Assembly: GCA_043228905.1 (NCBI GenBank)
Contig: JBHGNT010000011.1
Coordinates: 14,880,001-14,944,000 of the forward strand
Length of the DNA stretch: 64,000 nt
Reading direction: 5' to 3'
From: Azolla caroliniana
Taxonomy: Eukaryota > Plantae > Polypodiophyta
Position 1 is the first letter of the stretch; the number at the start of each line of letters is the position of its first letter. The notes below the pieces were generated by a model. It had not been told where the DNA came from and searched no databases. It was given only the letters and a program-made list of their open reading frames with translations. This document shows, one piece after another, positions 21,958 to 42,350 of this stretch. The position numbers and the translations under genes are program-made.

Positions 21958-22850
21958 TTAGGCAGAGATAAAGTCGGCTTGTCCGGATGCTTGCCGAGTC
22001 GGTAGATGTTGGAATAAGACAGTACTCGTTTGACCTTTCACCTCTAAGTTGTCTGCTCTTTGTGCACGTTGTTTCCCGTGCTGTAGATGGATCGTTGATC
22101 AGCTTTCGGTTCCTTTGCACTCACCTGCATCTTCAACCTTCAACTGATTGGCTCCTTCGACTTTGCTTGTTCGACTTGTTTGGCTGTGCCGTTCTTTGAA
22201 TTACCTTTTGCTTTACTTTCGGCTCTTCTTTGCTCACTCGCTTGTTGTAGTCCCATATGTCCTGTGAGTGCGTTGAAGCGTTGATCAAGGAGTGTTTTTG
22301 TTAGACTGTTGGTGATGTTCACTTCGGTATCCACCTTTTGGACTTCGAGCTTCTTGTTAGTGACGAGCTCTCGAATGTGATGGCACCTCACCTCAATATG
22401 CGTTGTCTTAGGATGGTATACCAGATTCGTGATGATGTGTATTGCACTTTCTGAGTTGCAATAGAGGGTTGGCACTAGATGGTCGTTTGGGTCTTTTGCA
22501 GAAAAATCAGCCAATAGTTGGTGCAACCAGATGGCTTCTTTGGTTGCCTCCGATGCGGCTATGTACTCGGCCTCTGTTATCGAGAGTGTCGTGCAATCTT
22601 GTAATTTCGACCTCCATGATATGGCATGACCGCCATAAGTAAAGACATAACCTGATGTCGACATCCAATTGTCTGGATTGCCAGTGTACTCAGAGTCGAT
22701 GAAGCCTTCAACTTTGATTGGACTATCTGATCCGAACATTAGTTGCACGTCTTCGGTGCCTCGTAGGTACTGGAATATGTTCTTTACATCCTCCCAGTGC
22801 TTCCATCCAGGTTTTGACATGTATCGGCTGACAACCCCTACAACATATGC
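21952..22850 (-). pseudogene. Copia RT C-terminus and RNase H (host of the 22851-41013 insertion; continues at 41014-41460)
   Basis: AYVVGVVSRYMSKPG, STSGYVF, ISWRSKLQ, EAEYIAA, HIEVR. Confidence 0.92.
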
Positions 22851-23374
22851 CCTAGGGGCGTCACTGTCAAAACTTGTATGATAGCACGTGAGTTCATCAA
22901 AAGGGGTTTAAATTAATTAGTGAGATACAGGATATATATATATAAGGGTATTAATAAGGATTTGAAAATATATTTACATAAGGGTATTATCAATTATGCT
23001 GGGAAAAAAATTACATAAGCCCGTGAAATATTAGATATTTCAATGAGATAGTAAAGAATGTATTATGCAAACAATACTCAAATTTGGAGTAGCATATATG
23101 CATACATAAATACATACACATGCACACATCCATATATACCCACATTCAAACATTACATCCATGAATATTTATATACGTACAATACACCCATTTATACATG
23201 CATACTGACTAAACATAAATATATGTACAAATATATATGACCATATGTAAATATGTACATACATGTACATACATGCATTACATACTACATACATATTAGA
23301 ATCGACCATATATATTGACATACATATATACATAATACATACATAAAAATTATATATTATATATATATCTGTAT

Positions 23375-23570
23375 TGTGGTGTGCATGTATGCCTTTGTGC
23401 CACTCTTTTAGCACACCCTTTTTAGGATGCATGTACCTAAGCCGACCCACCCTTTTAGCATACCCTTTTAAGCTAAGCCAACCCAAATGGGTACCTTTGT
23501 ATAAACTATAAATTGAGTAAGAAGTAAGAAGCTAACTACACTGGTTTTGATCTCTTATGTGCATTTCACA
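23375..23570 (+). mobile_element. Short solo LTR (196 bp), architecture similar to the 181-bp LTR family
   Basis: TGTGGTGTGCA..TGCATTTCACA; 4-bp TSD GTAT at 23371-23374 and 23571-23574; TATAAA box. Confidence 0.75.
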
Positions 23571-24035
23571 GTATGTATGTATACACATTTTTACAATTTA
23601 CAAACATATTTTATATATTACATATTACACACATATATTATTATACGCACAATTTTATACAAATGCAAATATACAAACCAAACAGAAAAAAATAAATTAC
23701 ATATTATATATATATACACATATACACACATTCCATACATACAATACAATATGTACATACATACACACACAAACATAACACACATCACATATGAATACCA
23801 CATACATGCATATATACCTACATTCATACATCACAACACATCACACATGCATATATACCTACATTCAAACATTACATCCATGAATATGTATATACATACA
23901 TTACACCCATTTATACATGCATATTGACTAAACATAAATATATGTACAAATATATATTACCATATGTAAATATATACATACACATACATACATGCATTAC
24001 ATACTGCATACATATTAGAATCAGCCATATATATT

Positions 24036-24145
24036 GAAAGAAAGAAAGAAATATATATTAACGTCTTCTAAGACCAAATTTGGCCCATGAGACAATTGGT
24101 TTACAACAAAAATGGGGTATTTACCCATTCATCGAAAGTAAAAAC
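24036..24145 (-). mobile_element. Severely 5'-truncated LINE 3' end
   Basis: Minus strand GTCTCATGGGCCAAATTTGGTC..GACGTTAA plus (TTTC)n tail resembles the 3' end of the LINE at 53627-53690. Confidence 0.6.
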
Positions 24146-24628
24146 ATAAATATGTATTATGTATATATGTATGTATTGACATGCAATAAAATTACATATT
24201 GCATATATACATACACAAATGCATATATACATACAAAACACAAAAAATTAAATTACATATTATATATTATATATGTACACATCACATACATATTAATACC
24301 TAAGATTACATATTATATGTATACAAATCTTCATATTTACAATTTACATATATGTATATTATGTATATACACATGCACACACACATAAATAAATTAGATA
24401 TTACATAGCATATAATCCACACCTATTAGACAATATACAAATTTACACATACATAAATTACATATATACATATGTTATTATTATTACATATATGTATAGA
24501 TACATACATAGATATATTACATATGTACATACATATTCCACATATCACCATATATATAGATTATATTGGATCATACAAACCACAATACTTACACACACGC
24601 GCGCGCGCGCGCGATATGTATATGTATA

Positions 24629-27600
24629 TGTTGAGAATCAAGCTCAACTTGGTCTAGTGTGTGAACTCACCTTGAGAGTGAATAGACACTCCAACGATCA
24701 AGAGTCACCATTAAGTCACCTCTTTGTATTCTAGCATTTAGTATGAGTCATAGAATCATATTCTATGACACATAACTTATGAGCTTTCACATTCCCCATG
24801 CTCCATGAGCCCTCCATGAGCCTTGTAGTTAATGAAGAGAGAGGGTGACTATATAAAGCACCCTCCTCCCACCTTGTATTGAGTTGAGTCTTTCTCCTTT
24901 GTTAATATACTTTACCTTGCGTATTCTCTGTGTTTCTCTCTCTCTCTCTCTCTCTCTCATACACACACACATAACTCACATCTCTTCCGCCTCACAAGAA
25001 TCCATCACTTGATTCTTTACATGGTATCAGAGCGATTTGGTAGCTCGATCTAGCCCATTCGCCTCATCGTGATCGTGTGTTGTGCTACACGCCGACGACC
25101 AAGAACCGGCTCATCGTTATCGTAGCTTCGCGACATAGCTCGCATTCAAAGAGAGAAGAAGACGAAGAAGAATCGACATAATGAATACTCAAATGGGGAG
25201 TGCTCTCTCTACCGAGAAGTTGGATCGAAACAACTTCGCATCTTGGGAGTACAAGATGCACCAATACCTTGTCAGACAAGGCTATTGGAGCTACATCAAA
25301 GGAGCGCATGAAGACCGACCTGCCGAAGTGGCTCCCAGATACGCGACATGGGAGCAAGCCACAAGCCGTGTGATGTATTGCTTGATGACATGTGTTCACA
25401 ATCACATGCTCGGCTACATTTGCGAAGCCAAGACGCTGAAGGAGGCATGGGAAAATCTACGAAAGATTTTTGCGGCAAACACAACTGCAAGACGACTTTA
25501 ACTCCGCAAAGAGTTGAACAACATTCAACAAAGGGGCATGTCCATTATGACATACACCTCGAAGATCAAGGAGCTTTGCGATTCTCTTGGCTCAATAAGC
25601 GTAAATATCGATGATGATGAGATGGTTCAAATATGCCTCGGCGGACCCAATCAATGCTATTGGTCGTAGAAAATCACGTGTGTACAAGGAGCAATGAGTC
25701 GGAAGGCCACATGCTCTACACGCACTCGAACGGAGGAAGAGGATGCGGATGGTCGAGAGGCCGATTCGGCCAAGGACAAGGCGGACGAGGTCCGACCTAC
25801 GATAACAGCTCCCAATTTCAGTCGCAAAACGGAAGCCAACGAGGAACCTTCGCAAGAAGGGGGAGCTTCCACTTTGGCCCAAACCGTCAAAACACAACCG
25901 AATGCGGATATTGCAGAAAGCTCGGCCACCACGAAGAAGAGTGCCGAAAGAAGATGTGTGAATCGGCTTCCACAAGCCGACAACTCACGAATTACGCGCA
26001 CAACTCCGACTATGAAGATCGTGGCGGAATGTATGCACACAACTCCGACTGTGGCGGAATGTTCATGATGAAACATAGAGCAAACTCTATGCCGGCCTCT
26101 ACCTCAACTAGTGCCTCCGGTCCGGAAGACGTATGGTTTGTCGATTCTAGTGCCTTGAACCATATGACATCGCATCAAGAATGGTTCCAAGAACTTCGAG
26201 AGCCAGAACGACCCGGCTATGTCGAAACCGGAGACGACACTACGCACCCGATTCAGCACATCGGCAATGTTCCGTTCGGAAAAGAAGGTAAGCAAAATTA
26301 CATTAAAAATGTCTTGCATGTACCGACCATTACGAAGAATTTGGTCTCCGTTAGCCAAATTGTAGAGCAAGGGATGCAAGTTCGATTTAATCAAGGTGGT
26401 TGCTTCATCGAAAAAGAGGGCCAACTCATTGCACGCGGACGAAGAGAGGGCCGAATGTTCATTCTCGACTCACATGAGATGAAATCGGCCATGTTCACAA
26501 AGGGCATGAAAGCCGACTCCGACATAGAGTTATGGCACAAGAGGATTGGCCATATAAATCTCCAAAAGCTCAAAGCAATGAAATCGAAAGGAGTCGTCAT
26601 CGGACTCCCAACATTCAAAGAGAAGGAGATTGAAGGTGTATGCGAAGCGTGCCAATTCGGCAAGCAACACCGACACCCATTCTCGAAAGAGCGGAACGTG
26701 AGCAAAGGTCTACTCGACGTAGTCCATTCCGATGTATGGGGACCGGCATAGACGGCTACATTCGGCGGATGCCGATATTACGTGCTCTTCATCGACGACT
26801 TGTCTAGGCACACTTGGATCTACCCGATGCGGCAAAAGAGCGAAGTGTTTGTACACTTCCAAACATTCAAGAATGAAGTCAAGAAAGCCACGGGCCGACA
26901 TGTACGTTGTCTTCGATCGGATGGCGGCAAGGAGTACTTCTCGGACGATTTCAGGTGTATCTCCGAAAGGAAGGAATTCGGGGAGAATTCACTTGCCGAC
27001 ACACTCCGCAACAAAACGGAGTAGCCGAGCACAAAAATCGACACATCCTCGAAGTAGCACGGGCAATGATGAATGAGAAGCATATGCCCAAGTCTTATTG
27101 GGCTGAAGCTGCAAATGCGGCCGTCTACCTAATGAATCGGTGCACAACATCCGGCGTGCACGAGGTCACTCCGCACGAAAGATTCTTCGGAAAGAAGCCG
27201 AACCTATCACATGTTCGGATATTCGGATCCATTGCGTACGTGCACATCCCCGACGAGAAGCGACAAAAGCTCGACCAGAAGTCAGAGAAATGTATCCTCG
27301 TAGGATACTCACTGGAGCAAAAGGGATACAAGTGCTACAACCCCTCAACTCGAAAATCTCGAGTAAGTCGAGACATCGTCTTTGACAAGTCTGCATCCTG
27401 GTACGCACCAGAGACAACTTCGACTCCGACTCCGCTGGACCCGGAATCCGCCAAACAAGAGATAGAGGATGAAGATCGCCTTACGCGCATGATCGAAGAA
27501 AATCCGATCACGACCCGACTAAGCGGACCACAAGAGCCTTTGAGCGATCAAAGCACATCACGGCCTAGCCCAAAGATGGACAAAGGCAAGGCGAAAATGG

Positions 27601-30021
27601 CAGAATACGCAGACGATCGCTTCGACGACGGTGAGTCGACACACTCACTCAACAATGAGTTTGTCAGTTTCGAGGTACCAATCGAAGCTAAGAAAGCCCT
27701 CATCTTTGCAAATGAAAAGGTTCGCCGATCCACACGTGAAAAGAACCCCGTAAGCCGATTCGGCTACAACGATTATATGGTGTACCATTACGCCTTTATG
27801 ATAAAGGTAGCGACCGTATGGGAGCCGGAAACCTTTTCCAAGCCGCGAAGGACCTGCGATGGATCGAAGCAATGAACGAGGAGATGCAGGCACTACGCAA
27901 GAACGAGATGTGGGATCTCGTTCCCATCTCACCACACAAAAAGGCGATCGAATGCAGATGGATTTACAAAGTGAAGTACAACGCCGACGGCTCCACCAAC
28001 CGCTACAAAGCGCGACTCATAGCGAAAGGATACGCTCAGACGCATGGCGTTGACTACGAAGAGACCTTTGCCCCGGTGGCAAAGATGACGACGGTACGGA
28101 CTGTAATTGCGCTTGCTACGGCGAAAGGGTGGCACCTCCATCAAATGGACGTCAAGAATGTCTTTCTACAAGGCGAATTAGAAGAGGAGGTGTACATGAT
28201 ACAACCACCCGGCTTCAACTCGAGCATCCATCCAAAAGCTGTATGCCAACTCAAGAAGCCACTCTACGGCCTCAAGCAAGCACCGCATGCTTGGCATTCG
28301 AAGATAACGCAATATCTTCATCAAATTTGCTTCCGTATGTCAAAATCGGACAACTCCCTCTACATACGAAGCGATTCCACAAGTCCGATCGTCATCCTCT
28401 TATATGTGGATGACCTAGTCATTGGAGGTGAGCATCTTGTCGAAATCAATAAGGTCAAATCCCTCCTTTCCGACAAGTTTGAGATGACGGACATGAAGGA
28501 GCTCCACTTCTTCCTCGGCATCGAGGTAATTCGGACTCCGGCTGGAATCATGATCTCTCAACGGCACTACATCCTCAACTTGTTATACAAGTTCGGTATG
28601 GCTGAGTGCAAATCCACGGCAACCCCGCTCGATCGCAATCTCAAACTAGATGCGAACTCCGGCACCAAAGCGTGTGAGCCGACTTAGTATCGGCAAATCA
28701 TCGGGAGTCTCATCTATCTCACGATCACTCGACCCGATCTCAGTTATCCGGTCGGTCTCCTTAGCCAATTCATGCAAACACCGTGTGATGCTCACTTGGA
28801 TTGCGCTAAGCAAGTTCTACGATACGTGAGTGGCACAATGGACCGCGGCATCCTCTACAAGACCGCGATGCCAATACGACTCGAGGGGTACACAGACGCC
28901 GATTGGGCTGGCTACAAAGCTGATAGAAGATCAACCTCCGGATTCGTTTTCTCCCTCGGTAGTGGAGTAATATCCCGGAGTAGCAAAAAGCAACCGACCG
29001 TTGCTCTTTCGAGCACAGAGGCGGAATATAGGGGCGCAGCCGTAGCTGCATGTGAAGCCGTATGGCTCAAGAGGATTTTGAAGGATCGGGGCGTACCCAT
29101 CAAGGATCTGACTCCCCTTTACTGTGACAACATGAGAAGTATCTATTTGGCTTGGAACCCGGTGTTCCATGTGCGGACAAAGCAAATCGAAGTGCACTAT
29201 CACTTCATCCGAGAGCGTGTTCTAGCTGGCGATGTCGACCTACAACACATTAGCACCAATCTTCAAACGGCCGACATCTTCACTAAAGCATTAGGGGCCG
29301 ACAAGCTATGGCAATTCATGACCGATCTCGGCTTGACGATCCCTGACCTGCCAATCTTGAGGGGGAGTACTAAAGACACTACGCAATAACGCGTGGATTA
29401 CGCAACCGCGCAACGAAGCCGCGAAGAGCCGATCTACCGCACAAAGCCGCGAAGAAAGACGCAAGCCGACGCATAGACTTTGCAACTACGCACAACGCAA
29501 GCTAGAGCACAGATTCTGCAACTCTGCATAAATGTGAGTCGACGCGGACTCCGGAACGTGAGGCGAAGCGGATTTCGGATACCGTCTGAAACCGACCCGA
29601 CTTGAGCTTGAGGGGGCGTGTTGAGAATCAAGCTCAACTTGGTCTAGTGTGTGAACTCACCTTGAGAGTGAATAGACACTCCAACGGTCAAGAGTCACCA
29701 TTAAGTCACCTCTTTGTATTCTAGCATTTAGTATGAGTCATAGAATCATATTCTATGACACATAACTTATGAGCTTTCACATTCCCCATGCTCCATGAGC
29801 CCTCCATGAGCCTTGTAGTTAATGAAGAGAGAGGGTGACTATATAAAGCACCCTCCTCCCACCTTGTATTGAGTTGAGTCTTTCTCCTTTGTTAATATAC
29901 TTTACCTTGCGTATTCTCTGTGTTTCTCTCACTCTCTCACTCTCTCTCTCTCTCTCATACACACACACACATAACTCACATCTCTTCCGCCTCACAAGAA
30001 TCCATCTCTTGATTCTTTACA
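24629..30021 (+). mobile_element. Full-length Ty1/Copia element, recently inserted but inactivated
   Basis: LTRs 24629-25021 and 29619-30021 nearly identical; TSD GTATA; PBS TGGTATCAGAGC (iMet); PPT GAGGGGGCG. Confidence 0.97.
25181..29389 (+). pseudogene. Copia gag-PR-IN-RT-RH polyprotein with premature stops and frameshifts
   Basis: EKLDRNNFASW, CGYC..GH..EEC, WFVDSSA, WHKRIGH..CEAC, HSDVWGP, TPQQNGVAE, YKARL, LYVDDL, ADIFTKAL; stops end at 25501, 26751 and 28687. Confidence 0.95.
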
Positions 30022-30878
30022 GTATACTTACAACATACATTGGATATATACATGCATATTACATACATATTACAAACATACATCCATATATGACCCATAT
30101 ACATACTAAACATGAAAATATCCCAAAAATATACATACATAAATACACATTCATATATTTACATACATATGACCACATACACACATATATACATACACAT
30201 ACATACATTGGATATATACATACATATTATGCACATATTACAAACACATTCATACTCATTGAATGATGTATATTGACATATACATATATGCATACACATA
30301 CATACATTACATATGTACATACATGTTCCACATATCACCATATATATACGTACATATGCTTGCAATGTTATAAGTTTTACAAACAGACATCCATACACAT
30401 AAATACATTACATACACATGCATACATACATTACATATGTACATATATATCATCACCAAGTACAATAAATACATATATAAATACACATACATAAATATTA
30501 CGAATAAACATCCACACACTCATGTACGCATATATGCAACCACTGTTACACATACATACATTACATATTGTCATGTGTCGGGACCGAACCATGTGGGTTC
30601 GGTCCCAAGTCGAACGATGACAAATCAAGAAGTGTTAGAGTTAGTTAGAGGTCGAATCAAGAATGTAATTAGATGAACATGAATGTATAAATAGAGTGAA
30701 TGATGAATGGAAATGGAGGAGTATTTGGTTCTAATCTGTGTACATTACATTGGTGGAGATGACGGGCTAATTCACAAAAGGTCGCCGCTGTAGTAGAAAA
30801 GAGATCTGGATCAAGTCACTGCCACAGCAAAACAGTGAGCCCAAATCACACAATAGTGCAACAAATCTGCGCACAGAG

Positions 30879-31856
30879 ATGCCGAAATCAGAGTTTGATA
30901 GCAGCATGAGTATGCAGCCGGAGTTCGTGGAACAACATTCATCAAGTCCTGCAAATGATCAAATGTTTCAAGCCATAACTACCATGATGATGCAGGTAAA
31001 TCATACAAATCAAACACTCATGAATTGGTTAACTAATCAGTCACAGTTAACAACCAAGCCTGAGAAACAAAAAGATTCAAGAATCCGCCCGCGATCTTTC
31101 TCTGGACTTCCAACAGAAGACATTCTGGCCTGGTTGGATCATTTCGAGAATGTTGCAGGCTACCATGAGTGGGATGACGGCCGAAAAGCACTCGAGCTCC
31201 GCACAGTTCTAGAGCATGTGGCTGCGACCTGGTTCATCCAGCAGCCTGAAGAGATAAAACGTGATTGGCCATACCTGCGCGAGCAGTTAATACAGCAATT
31301 CGCCAACAACGATGTCACTCAAACAGCATTGCAACAATTAGACACTCTACGACAACAACCACTTGAACCAGTGGCACAATTTGCCGTCAAGTTAAAGCAA
31401 CTATTGTTAAGGGTAGATCCACATATGAAAGAAACTATGAAACTCTATTTCTTGCTACCTCGACTACGCCATGATATAGCCAGACGGGTGAAAGATCAAG
31501 GTCCAACAACATTTCAGATGGCGATACAGATTGCGCAACGCATAGAGTCTCCAGGCTACATCGAATTACAGCATGCACCTACACAGTCACAACAAATTAG
31601 TCAGAAAGTTCCAATGGAAACCACAGTAACTCCGATGGAGATTGATGTGCAAAATGCTCAATTTAATACAAGAAAGCACTTATCGGATCGTGACAGCCAA
31701 GGAAGACCACGATGTTTCTATTGCAACTCGTATGGGCATGTAAAGAAACATTGCAGAAAATTTGCAGCATCCAAGCATCATCAAAATGTGCAGATACATC
31801 TGGCAGATTCAACTTCACTCGCCGAAGTACCGGGAAACGGCAATGCGGGATGTTGA
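30879..31856 (+). CDS. gag: Gag (Ty3-type capsid and CCHC knuckle CFYCNSYGHVKKHC)
   Basis: Uninterrupted 325-aa ORF; PRSFSG..WL..FE, PMEID motifs. Confidence 0.93.
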   Translation: MPKSEFDSSMSMQPEFVEQHSSSPANDQMFQAITTMMMQVNHTNQTLMNWLTNQSQLTTKPEKQKDSRIRPRSFSGLPTEDILAWLDHFENVAGYHEWDDGRKALELRTVLEHVAATWFIQQPEEIKRDWPYLREQLIQQFANNDVTQTALQQLDTLRQQPLEPVAQFAVKLKQLLLRVDPHMKETMKLYFLLPRLRHDIARRVKDQGPTTFQMAIQIAQRIESPGYIELQHAPTQSQQISQKVPMETTVTPMEIDVQNAQFNTRKHLSDRDSQGRPRCFYCNSYGHVKKHCRKFAASKHHQNVQIHLADSTSLAEVPGNGNAGC

Positions 31857-34800
31857 AGGAAGAGCAACTACCGCACTTTCAGGCCGCTACCTCTTCCACT
31901 CGCATAGTTTGTTCCACAATGGCACGCATTCATAACCAACCCTATGAAGCATTATTAGATTCAGGGAGTACAATTTCATCAATTAGTTTAGATTTAGTAC
32001 ATTCATTGCACTTACCCACATCTAGTGCACCCCCTATTAATGTCATTTTTGGAGATAAACAAAAACTTTATCAGTCATCAATGCATGCACACTGCACATT
32101 CATACTAGCACAACACACATTCATGCATTCATTCTATGTACTACCAAGACAGCTTTTTTCTTTAACATTAGGATGTGATTGGTTTGTGAAACATGGCGCT
32201 CAACTGCATTTTGACACACAAAGGTTAGTCCTACCTCATAATAAACCATTCACCACGATCCCTTTACTTAGTGCACCGCATGTGAGTACACAGGTCATCC
32301 ATACACAGATCCATGTCGAGCCATCAGAGTCGCGTCTAGTAGACCTACGACACTTACTCAAGTCGTTTCCATCAATTTTCTGTAAAACTCAAAAAACAGC
32401 ACAAGTAAATCTACCAGTTCAACATGCCATTCCGACAACCGATGCTCCTCCAGTTCGGATGGCAACGCGACGGCGGTCCCCTCTTGATCACCAAAGGATC
32501 GCCACAGCAATCCAAGATATGCTGGAAAAAGATATTATTGAGCCATCAACAAGTGAGTGGGTATCAGAACCACATTTAGTTCGCAAAGAAGATGGATCAT
32601 TCCGATTTTGCATCGATTTCAGGCAGCTAAATAAAGTGACGAAACATGACAGGTACCCACTTCCGAGGATCGACGACTTACTAGACCAATTAGGACATTC
32701 CAGGTATTTCACATCCTTGGACCTAGCTTCTGGCTACTGGCAGATTCCCCTACACAAAGAAGACAAACATAAAACAGCATTTCGAACACAACACGGACTG
32801 TATCAGTTCAAGCGCATGCCATTTGGATTATCAGATGCTGGTAGCACATTTCAGAGGATGGCAAATAATATTTTCCAAGACTTGATTTTTCAAGGTGTTG
32901 TTTTGGTCTATCTAGATGACATATTGATTCACACAGATAGCTGGCCAAAACACATTCAGATCTTACGTGAAGTTCTCCTCCGTGTTCAAAAATACAACCT
33001 GCAATTGCAATTCAAGAAATGCAAGTGGGGTGCAACAACACTACGATTTTTAGGGTTCATGATCTCAGAAAAAGGAATACAACTAGATCCCGCAAAGACA
33101 CGAGCTGTCGCGGAATATCCGAAGCCATCCAACATAAAGTCCCTACAGAGTTTCCTAGGATTAGTGAATTTTTCACTAAGGTTTGTTCCCCATCTAGCAA
33201 CAATTACAAATCCCTTACGGAAACTATTAAAGAAGGATCAACCATACCAGTGGACCGAGGAGTGTGAGAAAAGTTTTCAGACAATCAAACAATTGATTAC
33301 CTCAGCAGCAACATTAGCATTCCCTGATTTTAGCAAGATTTTCCACCTACAGACAGATGCTTCAAATTTTGGAATTGGAGCAGTCCTTTTGCAACAAGAT
33401 GACAGTGATAGTTGGCGCCCAATTGCTTACATAAGCCGCGCACTAACAAAATCAGAGCAAAATTATTCAACAACTGAAAAAGAGTTTTTAGCCGTAGTAT
33501 GGTCATTTCAGAAATTCCATCCATACCTACATGGCACAATGGTGCAGGTGGAGACGGATCATCAACCATTGATATCCCTAATTCAGAAAACACATCCACC
33601 AGGGAGACTACTTCGGTGGGCTCTGGCTTTGCAAGAATACAAATTCACTATGATCTATAGACGTGGCCAATCCAATGTCGTGGCAGACGCCCTCTCACGG
33701 ATGGAATATCAAGCTGCTCAAGTAAGTGCGACTGATCTTCCTCTACATCAACATCAAATAAAACAGATGCAACAACAGGATCCCACAATAAAAAAAATTA
33801 TCTTACAAATTCAGGCAAGTCATGATGCACATTTACACCGAAATTTTATCATGATTGACAATATTCTATATTATGTAAGTCAGGGATGTCCACCACGATT
33901 GTATGTCCCCGAAGCATTGCGACCGACATACCTTGATTTCTATCACAGCCACCAACTATCTGGTCATTTCGGTTTCCATAAGCTTCTCCATCGAATACGC
34001 TCCATGTACTATTGGCCGAAGTTGCGACAATCCATATCAGTGTTCCTCCAATCATGTCCCACGTGTCAGGCTGTGAAGAATCCACACTCCACAAGCGGAT
34101 CGCTGACACCAATCACTGTAAAAGAACCCTTTGAGATGGTCGGTTGGGACCTCATGGGGCCATTCCCAGTTTCGCTTCAGGGCAACAGATACATACTAGT
34201 GATCACGGAATACCTCACTCGTTGGTGTGAGGCCGTTGCTCTACCTGATGCAACGGCAAATACAATGGCGAGGGCGCTCCTACAACGCATTATTTTTCCC
34301 CACGGGTGTCCACAAAAACTCCTTTCCGATCAGGGATCTCAATTTCGAAGTGAAGTTCTCAAAGTACTTGCACAAAGTTTGGGGATCAAGCAATTATTTA
34401 CATCACCATACCATCCCCAAACTAACGGGCTCACAGAAAGGATGAACAAAACTATAAAACAAGTGATAACGGCTTATGTTGATCCATTGCACCAGTCATG
34501 GGATCAGGTGCTTCCATTTGCGGTACATGCTTACAACACTTCGGTCCAAGAATCAACTCGGGTGAGTCCATTCCGAGCATTGTATGGCAGGGATCCACGA
34601 CTTCCACCAGACCCACAAGTCATCAAGATACACACCAATCACACGGATGCAACATCATGGTGGTTACATTTACAATCCAACATTCCTCTCCTTCGACGGG
34701 CACTTCAATACAACCTGACTAAGGCACAAGCACGCCAGAAGAAACATTTTGATGCCACACATCAGCCAGGAGAATTGGAAAAAGGGGACCAAGTGAGGGT

Positions 34801-35152
34801 TTATTACCCTATTCGCCGCAAAGGATTGTGCGAGTCTTTTATGCATCGTTGGCTCGGTCCTTATCAGGTCACACACCGCATCAGGACTAATACCTATCGA
34901 CTACGGAGAATAGATACAGCATCCCAAACTGTTGCACACATTTCAAGGATTAAAAAGATACCTGGATCAAGTATGCCGACCACCCTTCCACCGGTCGTAG
35001 GTAGCGAAGCAGCACAGTCCTCGGTCTCTCCCAGTTCGGTGAGCCACGAAATCGCAACACAACAGGAGCAAAACGAGTCGAATGAGGCGGAAACACCGTC
35101 AGACGAAACAGACGGAAGGGGAGAAGCAGCATCAGACACAGACCACGCATAG
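31832..35152 (+). CDS. pol: Pol (PR LLDSGS, RT YLDD, RNase H TDAS, integrase HHCC/DDE/GPY), expressed by -1 frameshift
   Basis: Uninterrupted ORF 31712..35152 in the -1 frame relative to gag; slippery G GGA AAC at 31832-31838. Confidence 0.95.
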   Translation, partial: GKRQCGMLKEEQLPHFQAATSSTRIVCSTMARIHNQPYEALLDSGSTISSISLDLVHSLHLPTSSAPPINVIFGDKQKLYQSSMHAHCTFILAQHTFMHSFYVLPRQLFSLTLGCDWFVKHGAQLHFDTQRLVLPHNKPFTTIPLLSAPHVSTQVIHTQIHVEPSESRLVDLRHLLKSFPSIFCKTQKTAQVNLPVQHAIPTTDAPPVRMATRRRSPLDHQRIATAIQDMLEKDIIEPSTSEWVSEPHLVRKEDGSFRFCIDFRQLNKVTKHDRYPLPRIDDLLDQLGHSRYFTSLDLASGYWQIPLHKEDKHKTAFRTQHGLYQFKRMPFGLSDAGSTFQRMANNIFQDLIFQGVVLVYLDDILIHTDSWPKHIQILREVLLRVQKYNLQLQFKKCKWGATTLRFLGFMISEKGIQLDPAKTRAVAEYPKPSNIKSLQSFLGLVNFSLRFVPHLATITNPLRKLLKKDQPYQWTEECEKSFQTIKQLITSAATLAFPDFSKIFHLQTDASNFGIGAVLLQQDDSDSWRPIAYISRALTKSEQNYSTTEKEFLAVVWSFQKFHPYLHGTMVQVETDHQPLISLIQKTHPPGRLLRWALALQEYKFTMIYRRGQSNVVADALSRMEYQAAQVSATDLPLHQHQIKQMQQQDPTIKKIILQIQASHDAHLHRNFIMIDNILYYVSQGCPPRLYVPEALRPTYLDFYHSHQLSGHFGFHKLLHRIRSMYYWPKLRQSISVFLQSCPTCQAVKNPHSTSGSLTPITVKEPFEMVGWDLMGPFPVSLQGNRYILVITEYLTRWCEAVALPDATANTMARALLQRIIFPHGCPQKLLSDQGSQFRSEVLKVLAQSLGIKQLFTSPYHPQTNGLTERMNKTIKQVITAYVDPLHQSWDQVLPFAVHAYNTSVQESTRVSPFRALYGRDPRLPPDPQVIKIHTNHTDATSWWLHLQSNIPLLRRALQYNLTKAQARQKKHFDATHQPGELEKGDQVRVYYPIRRKGLCESFMHRWLGPYQVTHRIRTNTYRLRRIDTASQTVAHISRIKKIPGSSMPTTLPPVVGSEAAQSSVSPSSVSHEIATQQEQNESNEAETPSDETDGRGEAASDTDHA

Positions 35153-35466
35153 TGGTAGATTTGATTTTTCCTTTTGTGAAAAAGGGGAAAAGTCAAAAAA
35201 GCTCATTTTTAGGTGTCTCAACTTTGTGGTCCTCTGAGTGGGAAAGGTCCTAAGAGCTTGGCCTTCAATTTCTTAAAGGGGGAGGTGTCATGTGTCGGGA
35301 CCGAACCATGTGGGTTCGGTCCCAAGTCGAACGAAGACAAATCAAGAAGTGTTAGAGTTAGTTAGAGGTCGAATCAAGAATGTAATTAGATGAACATGAA
35401 TGTATAAATAGAGTGAATGATGAATGGAAATGGAGGAGTATTTGGTTCTAATATGTGTACATTACA

Positions 35467-35818
35467 ATATATACATATATACATATATACATATATGTAC
35501 ATTCATGCATGAACATACATACATTGCATATGCATATATTACAATTGCATATACATACATGTACATTGACATATGCATGTACAATTGAATCATGTACATT
35601 GACATATGCATATACATACATACATTACATATGCATACACATATGACATATGTACATTCATACATGGACATACCTATATTCATTTATACATTAGATATAT
35701 ATGTACATAAATATTATGCACATATTACAATCACACATCCATACACATTGAATCATGTACATTGTCATATGGATATATGCATACAAATACATACATGCAT
35801 CCATACACATACACACAT

Positions 35819-35875
<57 letters not shown>

Positions 35876-37548
35876 TACATACATACATACATACTATGCA
35901 TACATACATGACATATGCATATATGCATACACATATATTAGATACACACACACATACGTATATATATATATATTACACATAAACATACATACATATTACA
36001 AACAAACATCCACACACACACATATATGCACATATGCATTCACATAAAAATATACATACATTACATATTCATACACATATGTGCATTCATACATGGACAT
36101 GCATATATTCATTTATACATTGCTACATGTATATACGTATTTATGGTTACAATGATATGTGTATAAATTTTACAAACATACACTCATACACATACATACA
36201 TACATATTCCACATATCAGCATATATGTAGGTCACATGGGGTCATACAAACTAGAATATGTACATATATACATACATATTACGCACATATTACAAACAAA
36301 CATCCACATACATACATTACATATTACATATATACGCATTCTACATTCATACATTACACATGTACATATATTCATTCATACATACATTATTACATACATT
36401 ACATATTACATATTAGATATATACACATATGTATGTATACATATTGTGCACATGCACACCACAATATATATATATTCATTCATACATACATCACATATGT
36501 ACATTATATACATATACATACATACATTGCATATTGCATATACACGTATGTACATTCATACATACATACATTACCTATTACACATTAGATATATACGCAT
36601 ATGTATGTATACATATTGTGCACATGCACACCACAATATATATATTCGTACATACATACATTACATATTGCATATACATGTATGTACATTCATACATAGA
36701 TACATTACATATTACATATTAGATATATACACATATTATGTATGTATACATATATGATATATATATTCATTCATACATACATGCATTACATATTAGATAT
36801 TAGATATATACACATATTATGTATGTATACATATATATATTCATTCATACATACATACATTACATATTACATATTAGATATATACACATATGTATGTATA
36901 CATATATATATGTACATTATATACATATTCATACATAGATGCATTACATATTACATATTAGATATATACATATATGTATGTATACATATATATAGGTACA
37001 TTATATACATATTCATACATAGATGCATTACATATTACATATTAGATATATACACATATGTATGTATACATATATATATGTACATTATATACATATTCAT
37101 ATACATATCCATACATACATTCATGAAAGCATACATATATTCATGCATTCAAATTTCATATATTCATTCATTCATAGATACATACATTCATAGTCAACAT
37201 AACATTGATACATTCACATTTTGAAATTTTGAGTTTTGCTGCCCCATTTTGCCGCTTAATGCTGCCTCCTCTACTCTCTTGGTTTTGCCGCCTTTGTTCT
37301 CCTCTTTGTTGTTGCCTCTATTCTTCTCGTTTTTGTTGCCTCTACTCTCATTGCAACTTCCTTTGTTCTCTTCATATTGACATTGCCGCGTCTGCTCGCC
37401 TCGTTGTGCCACCATTGGTCGCCTCTATCCTCTGTAGTTGCTGCCACAATTACTATTCATAAAACATTTACAGGCATGTAAAAGAATACACACACGGACA
37501 CAACACATACACACATGCAATGCAATACATACATATGCACATATATAG

Positions 37549-37583
<35 letters not shown>

Positions 37584-38305
37584 CACATTCATACAAACAC
37601 ATGCAATATAATACATACATATGCACATGTATAGAACATATACTCACACACACACACACACACACACACATATAACACATACACATATACATATATACAC
37701 ATGCAATACAATACATACATATGCACATATATATAACACACAAACAACACATACACATATACATATATACACATGCAATACAATACATACATATGCACAT
37801 ATATATAACACACAAACAACACATACACATATACATATATACACATGCAATACAATACATACATATGCACATATATATAACACACAAACAACACATACAC
37901 ATATACATATATACACATACATATGCACATGTATAGAACATATACTCTCTCACACACACATATATAACACATAGACATATACATATACATATATACACAT
38001 GCAATACAATACATACATATGCGCATATATATAACACACATACACATATACATATACACACATGCAATACAATACATACATATGGACATATATATAACAC
38101 ATACATACACACATGCAATACAATACATACATATGCAGATGTATAGAACATATACTCACACACACACACACATATAACACATACACATATACATATATAC
38201 ACATGCAATACAATACATACATATGCACATATATATAACACACACAAACAACACATACACACACACACACATGCAATACAATACATACATATGCACATGT
38301 ATAGA

Positions 38306-38360
<55 letters not shown>

Positions 38361-38582
38361 ACACACATTCAATACAATACATACATACACACATACAATA
38401 CAATACAATACATACATATGCACATATATATAACACACACAAACAACACATACATACACACACATGCAATACAATACATGCATATGCACATGTATAGAGC
38501 ATATACTCACACACACATCTAACACATACATACATGCATACACACATTCCATACATACAATACAATACATACATATGCACAT

Positions 38583-38620
<38 letters not shown>

Positions 38621-38990
38621 TACACACATTCCATACATACAATATAATACATACATATGCACATGTATAGAACATTCACACACACATTCCCTACATACAA
38701 TACAATACATATATACATATGCACATGTATAGAACATTCACACACACATTCCATACATACAATACAATACATACATATGCACATGTATAGAACATTCACA
38801 CACACAAACACACACACATTACATACATATAACACATGCATTACAATACGATATGTAAATACATACACATGCAATTCAATGAATACAATACAATATGTAC
38901 ACACATACATACATAACATGGAATACAATACAATACATACATATGCGTGCACGCGCGTGCGCACACACACACACGTGTGCTTGCAAATGT
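35467..38990. repeat. Long CA/TA compound microsatellite with higher-order ~60-70 bp units
   Basis: (CA)n runs; repeated CACATGCAATACAATACATACATATGCACAT unit at about 37620-38800; non-satellite island at 37205-37460. Confidence 0.95.
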
Positions 38991-39288
38991 TAATTGCAAG
39001 GTTAAAATATGTGATTTCGGATTGACAAGAGTTGTATTTCATGACAGCCCAACGACTATATTCTAGACAATATAGTAATCTATTTAAATATACACATTTC
39101 ATGTTCTTAACACACAATTTGCAATCTTTAGGTGCTAAGAGATAATTAACTTATTATTTTGCAAAGAAGGTACACTCTCATTGAACTTGTTTCATCTTTG
39201 ATGAATATGAAAGTAGAGTTTGTGCTTGTATTTTTTCTAGTTTGAGTCCAAGAAGAGATTGCTAAAAGTTTTACTAGTTTTTGTGAAG

Positions 39289-39583
39289 ACCTTAGTAAAT
39301 CATTACTTCAAGGGCTTAGCTAAGGTAACCCATCAGTAAGTTGGAGTTTGAATTCGAGAGGAGAAGAGTTTCAAAAAAGGATGTAAGGGAACTCATATAT
39401 CGAGAGGTAATATAAACTTTGGTTTACTGTATAATTTCATCATTATAATGGTATTGATTGAGCCTTCTCTAATTTTTATGAAGATTCTTTTTTTTATTGC
39501 CATTATTAGATCCTTGAGTATCATCTACGTATGCTCAAGGATTGTTTGAGTGGAGGGGATAAGCCCAACTTTTTGTATCCCAA
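39289..39583 (+). pseudogene. Captured fragment of a plant group-D (TDY) MAP kinase gene: two exons and the intron between them
   Basis: Exon 39289-39406 TLVNHYFKGLAK..PISKLEFEFERRRVSKKDVRELIYRE; GT..AG intron 39407-39509; exon from 39510 ILEYHLRMLKDCLSGGDKPNFLYP; small frameshifting deletion after GLAK. Confidence 0.9.
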
Positions 39584-41013
39584 GTTTCTATTGAATTATT
39601 TTTCCAAGGATGCCTTAGATATGATATATCATCTATAGAAACCATATAAGAGTTATATGAGGCCCATTGGTGTAGGTACATACTTGTGTCCCACGTTATG
39701 AACATTAATAACTTGACTTATTCTCAAATAGGTTTCTGAATTTTATAGCAAGAAATTTGAAACCCCCAAAAATTTGGAAAAGAATATATTTTGGATAAAA
39801 TTTAGAATTTTTTTTGAACGTAAGTCATTAATATTTGAAATACATAAGCTAAGATTGGATTGTTTTGTCATAAAGAAAGTATAAGAGCTTTGTTTGGACC
39901 CAATTATATAGAAGTCCTATATCAATGATCCTTAATAACTATTTTGGTATTTTTTATGATGATTCTGTTTATGAGTTACTGATTTTGATAGAAATGCAAC
40001 TTTTGCTTTTCCTCATTCCTTGCATGAACTACTCAGAAGGAAACGAGTAACCAAGAGAGCAACAAGCGTCATCCTCCCTGAAAGGTCATATTATTGAGAT
40101 TCAAAAAGAAAGTATGAAACAAACCAAGGATGTGGAGAGGGCGTAGAGTGATGTTATGGTTATAATACAGGTCCAACATTGAAGATAGAAACTACATGAA
40201 ATTTATAACCTAAAATAAGCTTCTTTGGGTTTTCTATTTATATAGTTGGTCTTTATGAAGATAACCTTTATTGTAAAAAGTATTTTAAGTAGACATTGAA
40301 CAACAAAATGATTAATTTTATCTCATTTTTACAGTGTGATGTCTTACATTTCAAATGGAAATATAACTTATGTTGTCATTTGCTTGATCAATGTATTTGG
40401 GAAAAAATAATGTAGTGGCTTCTTATGAGTTTATCCATTAAACCAAACATAATGTTAATTTGTTAGTAATTTCATTATTGATATGCATTTGGATTGTCCC
40501 ATGTGTGCCCTTTGAGATATGCATGTCAAGTTCAAGATAGATTTTTTTGTAAATTACATTCTTTTTTATCACATCATATTCTTCATATGTTTAAATAAAC
40601 TATTGACATGAACTTATATGTGGCTTATATATGATATACCTCTAATGTTTTTGGGTAATGTTTTTGAATTGTTTGTGCATTACTATATACTTTACACATT
40701 GTGTTTTCAATTTATGTGGTACTTGATGAAGCATTTCTACAAAATTGCATATGCTCTTTAATGTTCTTTCACAAATTTGTGATCCATTCTAGGTCTCTTG
40801 GATTAGAAACTATGTGTGCATGTATATTTTCTATGTAAGGGCATTTAAAATAGGTGGTTATCAAAAAATATATTGGTAATAGGGGGTATTTTTATTAATC
40901 TTTTTTTTACAAAAGGGCCTCTAAAATAGTAAAAAACATACGTATAAGGGCTTTATAAATGATGTCATGAACGCACGTGATACAACCTTCTTATATATAG
41001 TGGAGTCCCTGGG

Positions 41014-41460
41014 ACATATGCAAGGTCTGGTCGGGTCACCACCATTGCGTACATGAAACTTTCTACAGCTGATGCGTAGGGTATTATGCTCATGTGCTTT
41101 CTCTCCTTTTTTGTGGATGGAGAATCTTTGTCCCATAGTTGGAGTGACATCGGAAGTGGTGTTGGTGCTGGCTTTGAATTCTCCATATTGAAGCGCCTCT
41201 AACATCTTTCAGATGTAGTCAGACTGGGAGAGCCAGAGAGTCTTTGTAGATTTTGATTTCACTCGATCCTCATGCCCAATATGCGTTGGGCTTGTTCGAG
41301 TTCCTTCATCGCAAATTTCTTGTGAAGGCTCCACTTTAGCTTTCCGATTTCGTCTTGATTGCTCCTTGCAATCAGCATGTCAGCGCCATATAGGATGAGG
41401 TAGATCTAGGACTCATCGGCCAATTGCTGAGTTTACATACACGGGCCGGAATCGGATTGG
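41014..41460 (-). pseudogene. Copia RT, upstream continuation of 21952-22850
   Basis: PYASAVESFMYAMVVTRPDLAYV; FAMKELEQAQRILG. Confidence 0.9.
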
Positions 41461-41574: not shown

Positions 41575-42350
41575 GAAAACTGTATTACAAGAAAAACAAG
41601 AATGACCAACAATTACAAAGAGAAGGAGAAGATGCTTACATAGTCACCTTCTCTCTAGGTTCTCTCACTAGAGTCGCCTCTTGGGAAGGAGGTGAAGTCT
41701 TAACTACCTAAAGATTATGTTTCATAGAACATTAATATCCTATGACGCACTAGTTACTATAGAAGGAGGTGGGCTGTTCACACACTTGAGTATCCTAGAG
41801 TGTGTTCCCACGCACGGGAAGTTGAGTTTGATTCTCAACAAGCCCCTTCAAACACAACTTCTGGTTGTCGGGTGGTTGGTTCAGACTAGTCTTTGAGTCG
41901 GCTTCAACTTCGAATGACTGAGTTTGATTCTCAACATGCCCTTCAAACATAATTTCCAGTTGTTGGGTGCGTTTCGGCTTCGAATGACCGGTTCACTCCT
42001 GCTGCTCCTTACTCCCCCTCAAGCTCAGCTGGTCAATGGGCGAAAGACCCAGGTTCGTCGTGAATTGCCACAGATTGTCGACTCCTAGGGCCTTGGTGAA
42101 GATGTCGGTCGTCTACAGGTTCGTGATCATTGATGATGTGATGTAGGTCGACATCCTCGGCCAGAACACGCTCTCGGATGAAGTGATAGTGCACTTCGAT
42201 GTGCTTGGTCCGAGCATGGAAAATTGGGTTTCAGGCCAGGTGGATGTTGCTCATGTTGTCGCAATACAGGAGAATCAGATCCTTGATGGGAACACTCAGG
42301 TCCTTCAGTATTCTCTAGAGCCAAACAACTTCACATGCGGCTACGGCCGC
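41465..42350 (-). mobile_element. Copia 3' remnant (RNase H end and LTR), related to the 24629 family, with a duplicated PPT/LTR-start segment
   Basis: YCDNMSNIHLA, HARTKHIEVHYHFIRERV, DIFTKALG; TGTTGAGAATCAAACTC occurs twice on the minus strand (about 41823-41840 and 41919-41936). Confidence 0.8.

Follow-up and report, generated by a model that had tools for sequence, protein, structure and literature searches.

The question raised by this stretch of the Azolla caroliniana genome, 64,000 nucleotides of contig JBHGNT010000011.1 that we refer to at its full length as the window, is what kind of mobile element the 18-kb block at positions 22851-41013 represents and what kind of enzyme could have moved it. 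In our view the block is likely to be a non-autonomous, cargo-carrying element of the Pack type that derives from a multi-copy cut-and-paste family served by an enzyme of the P-superfamily type, like the one encoded on a public metagenome contig that bears the same right end (ENA ERZ1034433 NODE_1000, 6,589 bp; hereafter L009).

The block is a single insertion, with an exact 8-bp target site duplication (TSD), ACATATGC, directly outside both of its ends. When the flanks are joined minus one copy of the duplication, a join computed for the frame check only, each flank being searched separately, one open minus-strand frame of a Copia pol gene is recovered, reading YASAVESFMYAMVVTRPDL up to the junction and AYVVGVVSRYMSKPGWKHW beyond it, so that removal of the block does restore the host frame as an earlier note on this DNA had claimed. 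That note had also placed the insertion within the reverse transcriptase (RT) of Copia, and here the insertion and its duplication stand but the site moves: one flank matches the RNase H open reading frame (ORF) of the Copia element nested within the block and the other matches the end of its RVT_2 ORF, which places the target at the point where RT and RNase H meet in Copia pol rather than in RT proper. Within the window a degenerate pattern of the tip is found only at the two ends of the element, and in independent copies homology begins exactly at these tips, with unrelated flanks.

The ends follow one plan. The family has a 15-bp terminal inverted repeat (TIR) with the consensus CCCGGGGACTCCACT, and an inverted inner box, CACGTG(A/C)GTTCAT(C/G)A, lies 19 bp further in. 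In the window copy the left end reads CCTAGGGGCGTCACT-N19-CACGTGAGTTCATCA and the reverse-complemented right end reads CCCAGGGACTCCACT-N19-CACGTGCGTTCATGA, with tips CCTAGGGG and CCCAGGGA, respectively, and with CACGTG at positions 35-40 of both ends, exactly as had been quoted from the letters. The spacer had been described as equal in length and unconserved. Its length is indeed 19 bp at both ends and the left and right spacers agree at only 6/19 positions, but copies of a given end keep the spacer of that end: on the right, spacer and inner box are almost invariant in close copies, and on the left the spacer is identical in the contig L001 (ENA ERZ1034377 NODE_719). The spacer is therefore end-specific and not free to vary, and the two ends are asymmetric. 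In addition, (A)AGGG(C/T) motifs cluster within about 180 bp of both ends, five on the plus strand versus ~0.16 expected, the latter being our own estimate from the window-wide frequency, and the right end holds four conserved (A)AGGG(C/T/G) motifs on the plus strand at ~40837, 40882, 40913, and 40946. The (A)AGGG(C/T) motifs of the left and right ends share one strand, so that neither end mirrors the other and the two are not equivalent.

Other copies were found in public contigs. A scan of ENA metagenome contigs with one pattern covering both ends led to L001, while right ends were sought through ORFs that read from the flank into the element, the last ~30 residues of which are encoded by the element. 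These residues were used in a word-based search and in one exhaustive HMMER search, both of which returned short ORFs on right-end contigs; L009 and L011 were reached by following an ORF further inward. Beyond the window this gives one left end (L001) and six right-end sequences (L005, L006, two in L007, L008, and L009), with unrelated flanks, and the termini are thus not single-copy, a possibility that the earlier note had named as fatal to its proposal. Every readable right-end flank differs, and in the seven-sequence alignment that includes the window homology starts at the tip. In L001 homology runs from CCTAGGGG, with 65/66 identical positions over the first 66 bp and ~87% identity over 500 bp, and the flank is a Copia gag gene unrelated to the flank in the window. 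Both independent left ends read CCTAGGGG, and this variant was therefore probably already present in the mobile progenitor of the subfamily to which the window copy and L001 belong. At the right tip the consensus CCCGGGG is seen in L005 and L006, the best-preserved copies, and the variants (CCCAGGG in the window, CCCAAGG in L008, CTTGGGG in L009, and CCTTGGAG in L007) are all C-to-T or G-to-A changes around the CpG. The CC ends that had seemed to fit no known family cleanly are, in their CC-YA-GGG form, variants of the CCCGGGG tip, and the label "unassigned" can be narrowed to a probable divergent P lineage. Scans of the viral contig and genome contig collections with the TIR and inner box gave no match. 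The two right ends of L007 (1-190 and 694-838) are diverged, lie in the same orientation ~694 bp apart, and have the tip CCTTGGAGCCTCCAC and the inner box TACGTGTGTTT; the pair could have arisen in tandem, by nesting, or through duplication of a solo end belonging to a sister subfamily.

Two young long terminal repeat (LTR) retrotransposons nested in the element account for 10.3 kb, leaving 7,867 bp rather than the ~7.6 kb first estimated, and the description of this remainder as mostly microsatellite holds, since 5,580 bp of it (71%) is a G-poor (6-8% G) low-complexity satellite of the ATAC/CA type, in one strand orientation throughout and with ATAC-phase tetramers at ~12-20 times the window background. 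Neither the element nor the rest of the window has a transposase ORF, and tblastn with the L009-type transposase found no trace of it at any point of the window; the element is therefore non-autonomous. What it does carry is an intron-containing fragment of a mitogen-activated protein kinase (MAPK) gene: the best PDB sequence matches of its DFG exon are MAP kinases (best E ~1e-3), together with a weak Pfam kinase match, and its C-terminal exons we take to be those of a group-D MAPK from the motif FEFERR..ILEYHP. This cargo region has no counterpart in L009 or L011. L001 has an ATAC satellite of the same kind, with Toc33/34 GTPase gene fragments in the place of the MAPK (PDB 2j3e, E 4e-10), and in L008, which is inserted in a Gypsy integrase, satellite begins 190 bp inside the end, so that the satellite type is common to the window copy, L001, and L008. 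The element thus has the make-up of a Pack-TYPE transposon, namely a TIR element lacking a transposase with host gene fragments (MAPK here, Toc33/34 in L001) between the family termini, and the earlier proposal, of a non-autonomous element from a little-described cut-and-paste family by which microsatellite tracts and pieces of host genes are spread, is supported in all its parts. The Toc33/34-cargo region, L001:1676-3806, recurs in L002 and L004 from two other ENA assemblies at 98.4% and 99.7% identity, and these may be further Pack copies, alleles, or the parent gene.

The candidate enzyme comes from L009, in which the right end lies at position 684 and window 41009-40160 corresponds to 688-1576 with 84% identity over 890 bp. 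An intact 1122-codon ORF, directed toward the right end, has its stop codon 155 bp inward of this match, and the end itself lies ~1 kb downstream of the ORF. A 234-codon ORF precedes the longer one, separated by a short, intron-like GT...AG interval, and together the two exons, which were searched one by one, would encode a protein of ~1350 amino acids. Another ENA assembly provides L011, which is 94% identical to L009 across the end of the ORF and the 3' region, and its match to the window stops at the same point, 40159; the interior of the window element was therefore replaced there. Each of the two L009 ORFs, looked up exactly, was found in L009 alone, and a transposase search of the viral contig and genome contig collections gave no relatives. 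The earlier note had held that an ordinary hAT or Mutator-like element (MULE) transposase between such ends would remove the novelty of the element, but in the enzyme linked to the right end neither a hAT nor a MULE signal is seen, and its resemblance is to P/THAP9. A feature search of the ESM-Atlas with the whole protein gave a score of 0.89, and 9 of the 10 best Pfam-bearing matches share one family or clan, the families shown including TNP-like_RNaseH_N, TNP-like_GBD, Tnp_P_element, and THAP9 clusters. With the core (residues 370-800) the score rose to 0.95 with 200 shared features, a value that shuffled proteins reach about once in 100, and all ten of the best named matches fall in the family or clan of the top match, with TNP-like_RNaseH_N, TNP-like_GBD, and THAP9 as the named families and no hAT family shown. 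A piecewise Pfam scan of the core gave only TNP-like_RNaseH_N, at a sub-threshold E of 0.11, over residues 385-415 around IIVEDETVIKRNVKWD. Using the P/THAP9 motifs DEMxI, SDG, and ExFFS, we take D389, D509, and E746 to be the putative catalytic triad, with spacings of 120 and 237 residues. The corresponding residues of the Drosophila P transposase are D230, D303, and E531, with spacings of 73 and 228 (PMC7776569). From this combination the core is most probably a split RNase H (DDE) domain with an insertion domain of the P-element type.

Transposases of the P superfamily use GTP as a cofactor and cleave the 5' end 17 nt inside the TIR, and while a THAP finger is typical of animal P elements, the superfamily is defined by its catalytic core. 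TSDs of 8 bp, and inverted repeats at both terminal and subterminal positions, are also characteristic of P elements (PMC7776569, PMC10983969). The family described here shares with Drosophila P, zebrafish Pdre2/THAP9, and Galileo the 8-bp TSD, the short TIR with a separate inner or subterminal inverted repeat and unlike ends (PMC7776569, PMC10983969), the occurrence of internally deleted non-autonomous copies, and a large transposase whose core, by language-model features, resembles a TNP-like RNase H with a GTP-binding insertion domain and has a putative D2-E spacing of ~230 residues. It differs in that it resides in a land plant, that its tips are CCCGGGG rather than the CA... of P, that its spacers are an equal 19 bp at both ends rather than the 9 and 21 bp of Drosophila P, that its protein of ~1350 amino acids lies below Pfam thresholds with no THAP detected, and that pieces of host genes and kilobases of satellite are found in its derivatives. 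From the 8-bp TSD, the asymmetric, bipartite layout of the ends, and the nature of the enzyme core (PMC7776569, PMC10983969), we conclude that the family is most probably a divergent P-superfamily lineage marked by CCCGGGG tips, by the absence of THAP, and by its escape from Pfam recognition.

Several observations weigh against this assignment. The enzyme class rests on language-model similarity, one sub-threshold Pfam match, and motif resemblance, and Pfam and PDB sequence searches of the L009 protein returned nothing at threshold. THAP has no Pfam match in either exon, even at E 10, and in its stead both exons contain a CxnC...(S/Q)HI(K/Q)Sx2H motif (two CxnC...Hx5H) that Pfam does not recognize in either case; these N-terminal motifs can be read as a possible duplicated non-THAP zinc finger. 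A single-sequence AlphaFold prediction of residues 371-800, made with no alignment, reached a predicted local distance difference test (pLDDT) value of only 32. The left end of a transposase-bearing copy was not recovered, so that "autonomous" is a presumption for L009, and its right tip is degenerate (CTTGGGG). The window copy is the only one with both ends in hand, so that the 8-bp TSD has n=1, and YAGGG at positions 3-7 of its tips resembles the hAT tip consensus YARNG, that is, (C/T)A(A/G)NG.

The alternative that fares best against these points is that the family belongs to a separate, unnamed DDE superfamily remotely like P/THAP9, for example a sister of P, Kolobok, or KDZ, and that the P label is a nearest-neighbor artifact. 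Such a lineage would accord with the failure of any Pfam model to reach threshold or of any PDB chain to be matched by sequence, with the absence of THAP and the D1-D2 spacing of 120 versus 73 in P, and with the finding that the two best whole-protein language-model matches are unannotated fungal clusters. We nevertheless regard it as unlikely, given that the core scores 0.95 against TNP-like_RNaseH_N/TNP-like_GBD clusters with all ten named matches in the same family or clan, that the only Pfam trace is TNP-like_RNaseH_N positioned at the predicted first catalytic Asp, and that the D2-E spacing of 237 and the 8-bp TSD fit P. Zisupton/KDZ, Merlin, and MULE, the other candidates with TSDs at or near 8 bp, had no Pfam match to the L009 protein, and none of these families was among the language-model matches shown, which tells against them indirectly.

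Less probable still, and in our view quite improbable, is a non-autonomous element of the hAT superfamily with the L009 ORF as an extremely divergent hAT transposase. The L009 protein has no match to zf-BED, the hAT dimerization domain, or any other hAT Pfam model, even at E 10, and the families of its ten best named core matches, all of which share the family or clan of the top match, are P/THAP9 with no hAT among them, despite the fact that the CxxC...Hx5H motifs look BED-like on our own reading. The YAGGG of the two window-copy ends is likewise offset by tips that begin with CC in most copies and by the best-preserved copies, which read CCCGGGG and lack YARNG. An 8-bp TSD with short imperfect TIRs and subterminal repeats is nonetheless the standard picture of a plant hAT element, and hAT is the usual superfamily with an 8-bp TSD listed for land plants (PMC9033089, PMC12973397). 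The likeness to Ac/Ds extends to non-equivalent subterminal regions with short repeated motifs and to heterogeneous, Ds-like derivatives (PMC3260210), from which the present family is set apart by a consensus tip without an initial YARNG and by a linked transposase without a hAT signature. A MULE was also considered and was rejected, as the ends have only ~50 bp in common, a long TIR is lacking, and the TSD measures 8 bp, not 9-11 bp. Finally, that the block is not a transposon at all and arose by chance or recombinational insertion of satellite into Copia, flanked by coincidental short repeats, might be suggested by a body that is mostly satellite and lacks its own coding capacity, but the exact TSD, the restored host frame, and the independent recurrence of the left and right ends in eight or more public contigs, each time beside unrelated DNA, leave this with a negligible probability.

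On the preferred reading, that of a Pack-type derivative of a P-like family, an enzyme supplied in trans would bind the inner box and the subterminal motifs and pair the two unlike ends. Cleavage would then take place at the tips, the element would be joined to target DNA cut with an 8-bp stagger, and gap repair would give rise to the ACATATGC duplication. The MAPK fragment and ~5.6 kb of ATAC/CA satellite would have taken the place of the interior of an L009-like element, starting 155 bp past the stop codon of the transposase, and the Copia and Ty3/Gypsy elements inserted into the element afterwards.

We know of no P-superfamily members among the Pack-TYPE elements. Those that have been described belong to the MULE, CACTA, and hAT superfamilies (PMC8903248, PMC6379663), and the window element is like them in being a non-autonomous TIR element in which family termini surround captured, intron-containing gene fragments that vary from copy to copy, and unlike them in that the mobilizing superfamily appears to be P-like and that much of the body is satellite and not genic. 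A P-type transposase is not described from land plants in the searchable literature: a review of land-plant transposable elements lists no P-superfamily elements in its table (PMC9033089), and a 2025 screen of 1007 plant genomes, with P among its 17 Pfam-based models, reported active TIR elements for seven superfamilies only, P not being one of them (PMC12973397). The balance of evidence tilts towards a broader proposal, that this fern lineage, or land plants, host a divergent branch of P that Pfam misses, with non-THAP fingers, CCCGGGG termini, at least one copy with an intact frame, and "Pack-P" derivatives that move gene fragments and kilobase-sized ATAC/CA satellites. A family missed by Pfam would explain unclassified elements with 8-bp TSDs and non-hAT ends in large fern genomes, some of which have probably been misfiled as hAT. 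If the proposal is true, gene-fragment capture extends to a further superfamily of DNA transposons and a transposon can serve as a vehicle for the spread of satellite arrays. A candidate transposase that is intact and has defined ends is now available for testing, and to this are added a variant subfamily, the biology of its cargo and satellite, and the public contigs that hold the enzyme gene. The features on which these conclusions are based are listed in Table 1.

Table 1. Features of the insertion, its surroundings, and the candidate transposase gene. Coordinates are those of the window unless a contig is named.
Feature	Position	Strand	Remarks
Host Copia pol, RNase H part, downstream of insertion site	22143-22850	-	BLASTP E 7e-38 to RNase H ORF of nested Copia
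TSD, left copy, ACATATGC	22843-22850	.	Adjoins left tip
Left TIR tip, CCTAGGGGCGTCACT	22851-22865	+	L001 has CCTAGGGGCTTCACT at its own left boundary
Family-specific left end	22851-23343	+	AAGGGT at 22944 and 22980, AAAAGGGGT at ~22897; 84-87% identical to L001 6067-5585, 65/66 in first 66 bp
Left inner inverted box, CACGTGAGTTCATCA	22885-22899	+	19 bp inside tip; identical in L001
ATAC/CA satellite, part 1	23080-24628	+	Overlaps satellite-like inner third of left end; unique islands 23380-23560 and 24060-24130
Nested Copia LTR retrotransposon	24629-30021	+	LTRs 393/403 bp, 97% identity; 5-bp TSD GTATA
ATAC satellite, part 2	30022-30568	+	79% identical to L001 4887-5191
Nested Ty3/Gypsy LTR retrotransposon	30569-35466	+	181-bp LTRs, 99% identity; intact 1146-aa pol ORF; ATAT on both sides
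ATAC/CA satellite, part 3	35467-38950	+	Higher-order units of 72, 84, and 172 bp
Cargo, intron-containing MAPK gene fragment, ~1.2 kb	38951-40159	+	DFG exon ~38996-39063
Cargo, C-terminal exons	~39340-39408, 39510-39581, 39990-40090	+	MAPK fragment
Family-specific right end	40160-41013	+	3' non-coding region of transposase-bearing copies; 84% to L009 688-1576 over 890 bp; also matches L011
Right inner inverted box, reverse complement CACGTGCGTTCATGA	40965-40979	-	Identical in L005, L006, and L009; one base off in L008
Right TIR tip, reverse complement CCCAGGGACTCCACT	40999-41013	-	Family consensus CCCGGGGACTCCACT; seven-sequence right-end alignment
TSD, right copy, ACATATGC	41014-41021	.	Adjoins right tip
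Host Copia pol, end of RT region, upstream of insertion site	41016-41198	-	E 0.003 to end of RVT_2 ORF of nested Copia; frame shared with downstream flank once element is removed
Candidate transposase gene, at least 2 exons (234 + 1122 codons)	L009:1731-5857	-	Short GT..AG interval

The nested retrotransposons have features of their own. The Copia element encodes the Pfam domains Pol_BBD, gag_pre-integrs, SH3_retrovirus, and RVT_2, and its two LTRs are identical over their first 300 bp, the differences being confined to the final 100 bp with its TC/CA microsatellites of variable length. The Ty3/Gypsy element is young, with very short LTRs and a separate, overlapping gag ORF, and its TSD appears to be 4 bp, not 5 bp. 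Exact look-up in the protein collection of its pol and of ten ORFs of the surrounding element gave no match, and a homologue search with the subterminal ORF P0003 returned only itself. The unique island at 23380-23560 in the left satellite, which L001 lacks, contains the subterminal motif three times on the minus strand (CACCCTTTTTAGG, CACCCTTTTAGC, and TACCCTTTTAAGC), and may represent binding sites clustered inside the element or the remnant of another end.

Outside the element the window is all retroelement, and the retroelement proteins and cargo genes are of the plant type. Positions 42036-42230 hold the RNase H tail of a second Copia, and three more LTR pairs, 16544-17094/21401-21952 (92%), 43893-44713/49513-50217 (95%), and 5731-6789/13979-15063 (95%), bound Gypsy-type elements on either side of the truncated host Copia, and the host region is therefore a mosaic of nested retroelements. 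At the left end an outward-facing ATG is located 45 bp inside the tip, and in both independent insertions an outward frame from this end (TPFDELTCYHTSFDS[DE]APR...) continues in frame into the ORF of the host retroelement (22701-22907 on the minus strand of the window and L001:6006-6290 on the plus strand), which, with two cases, may be due to chance.

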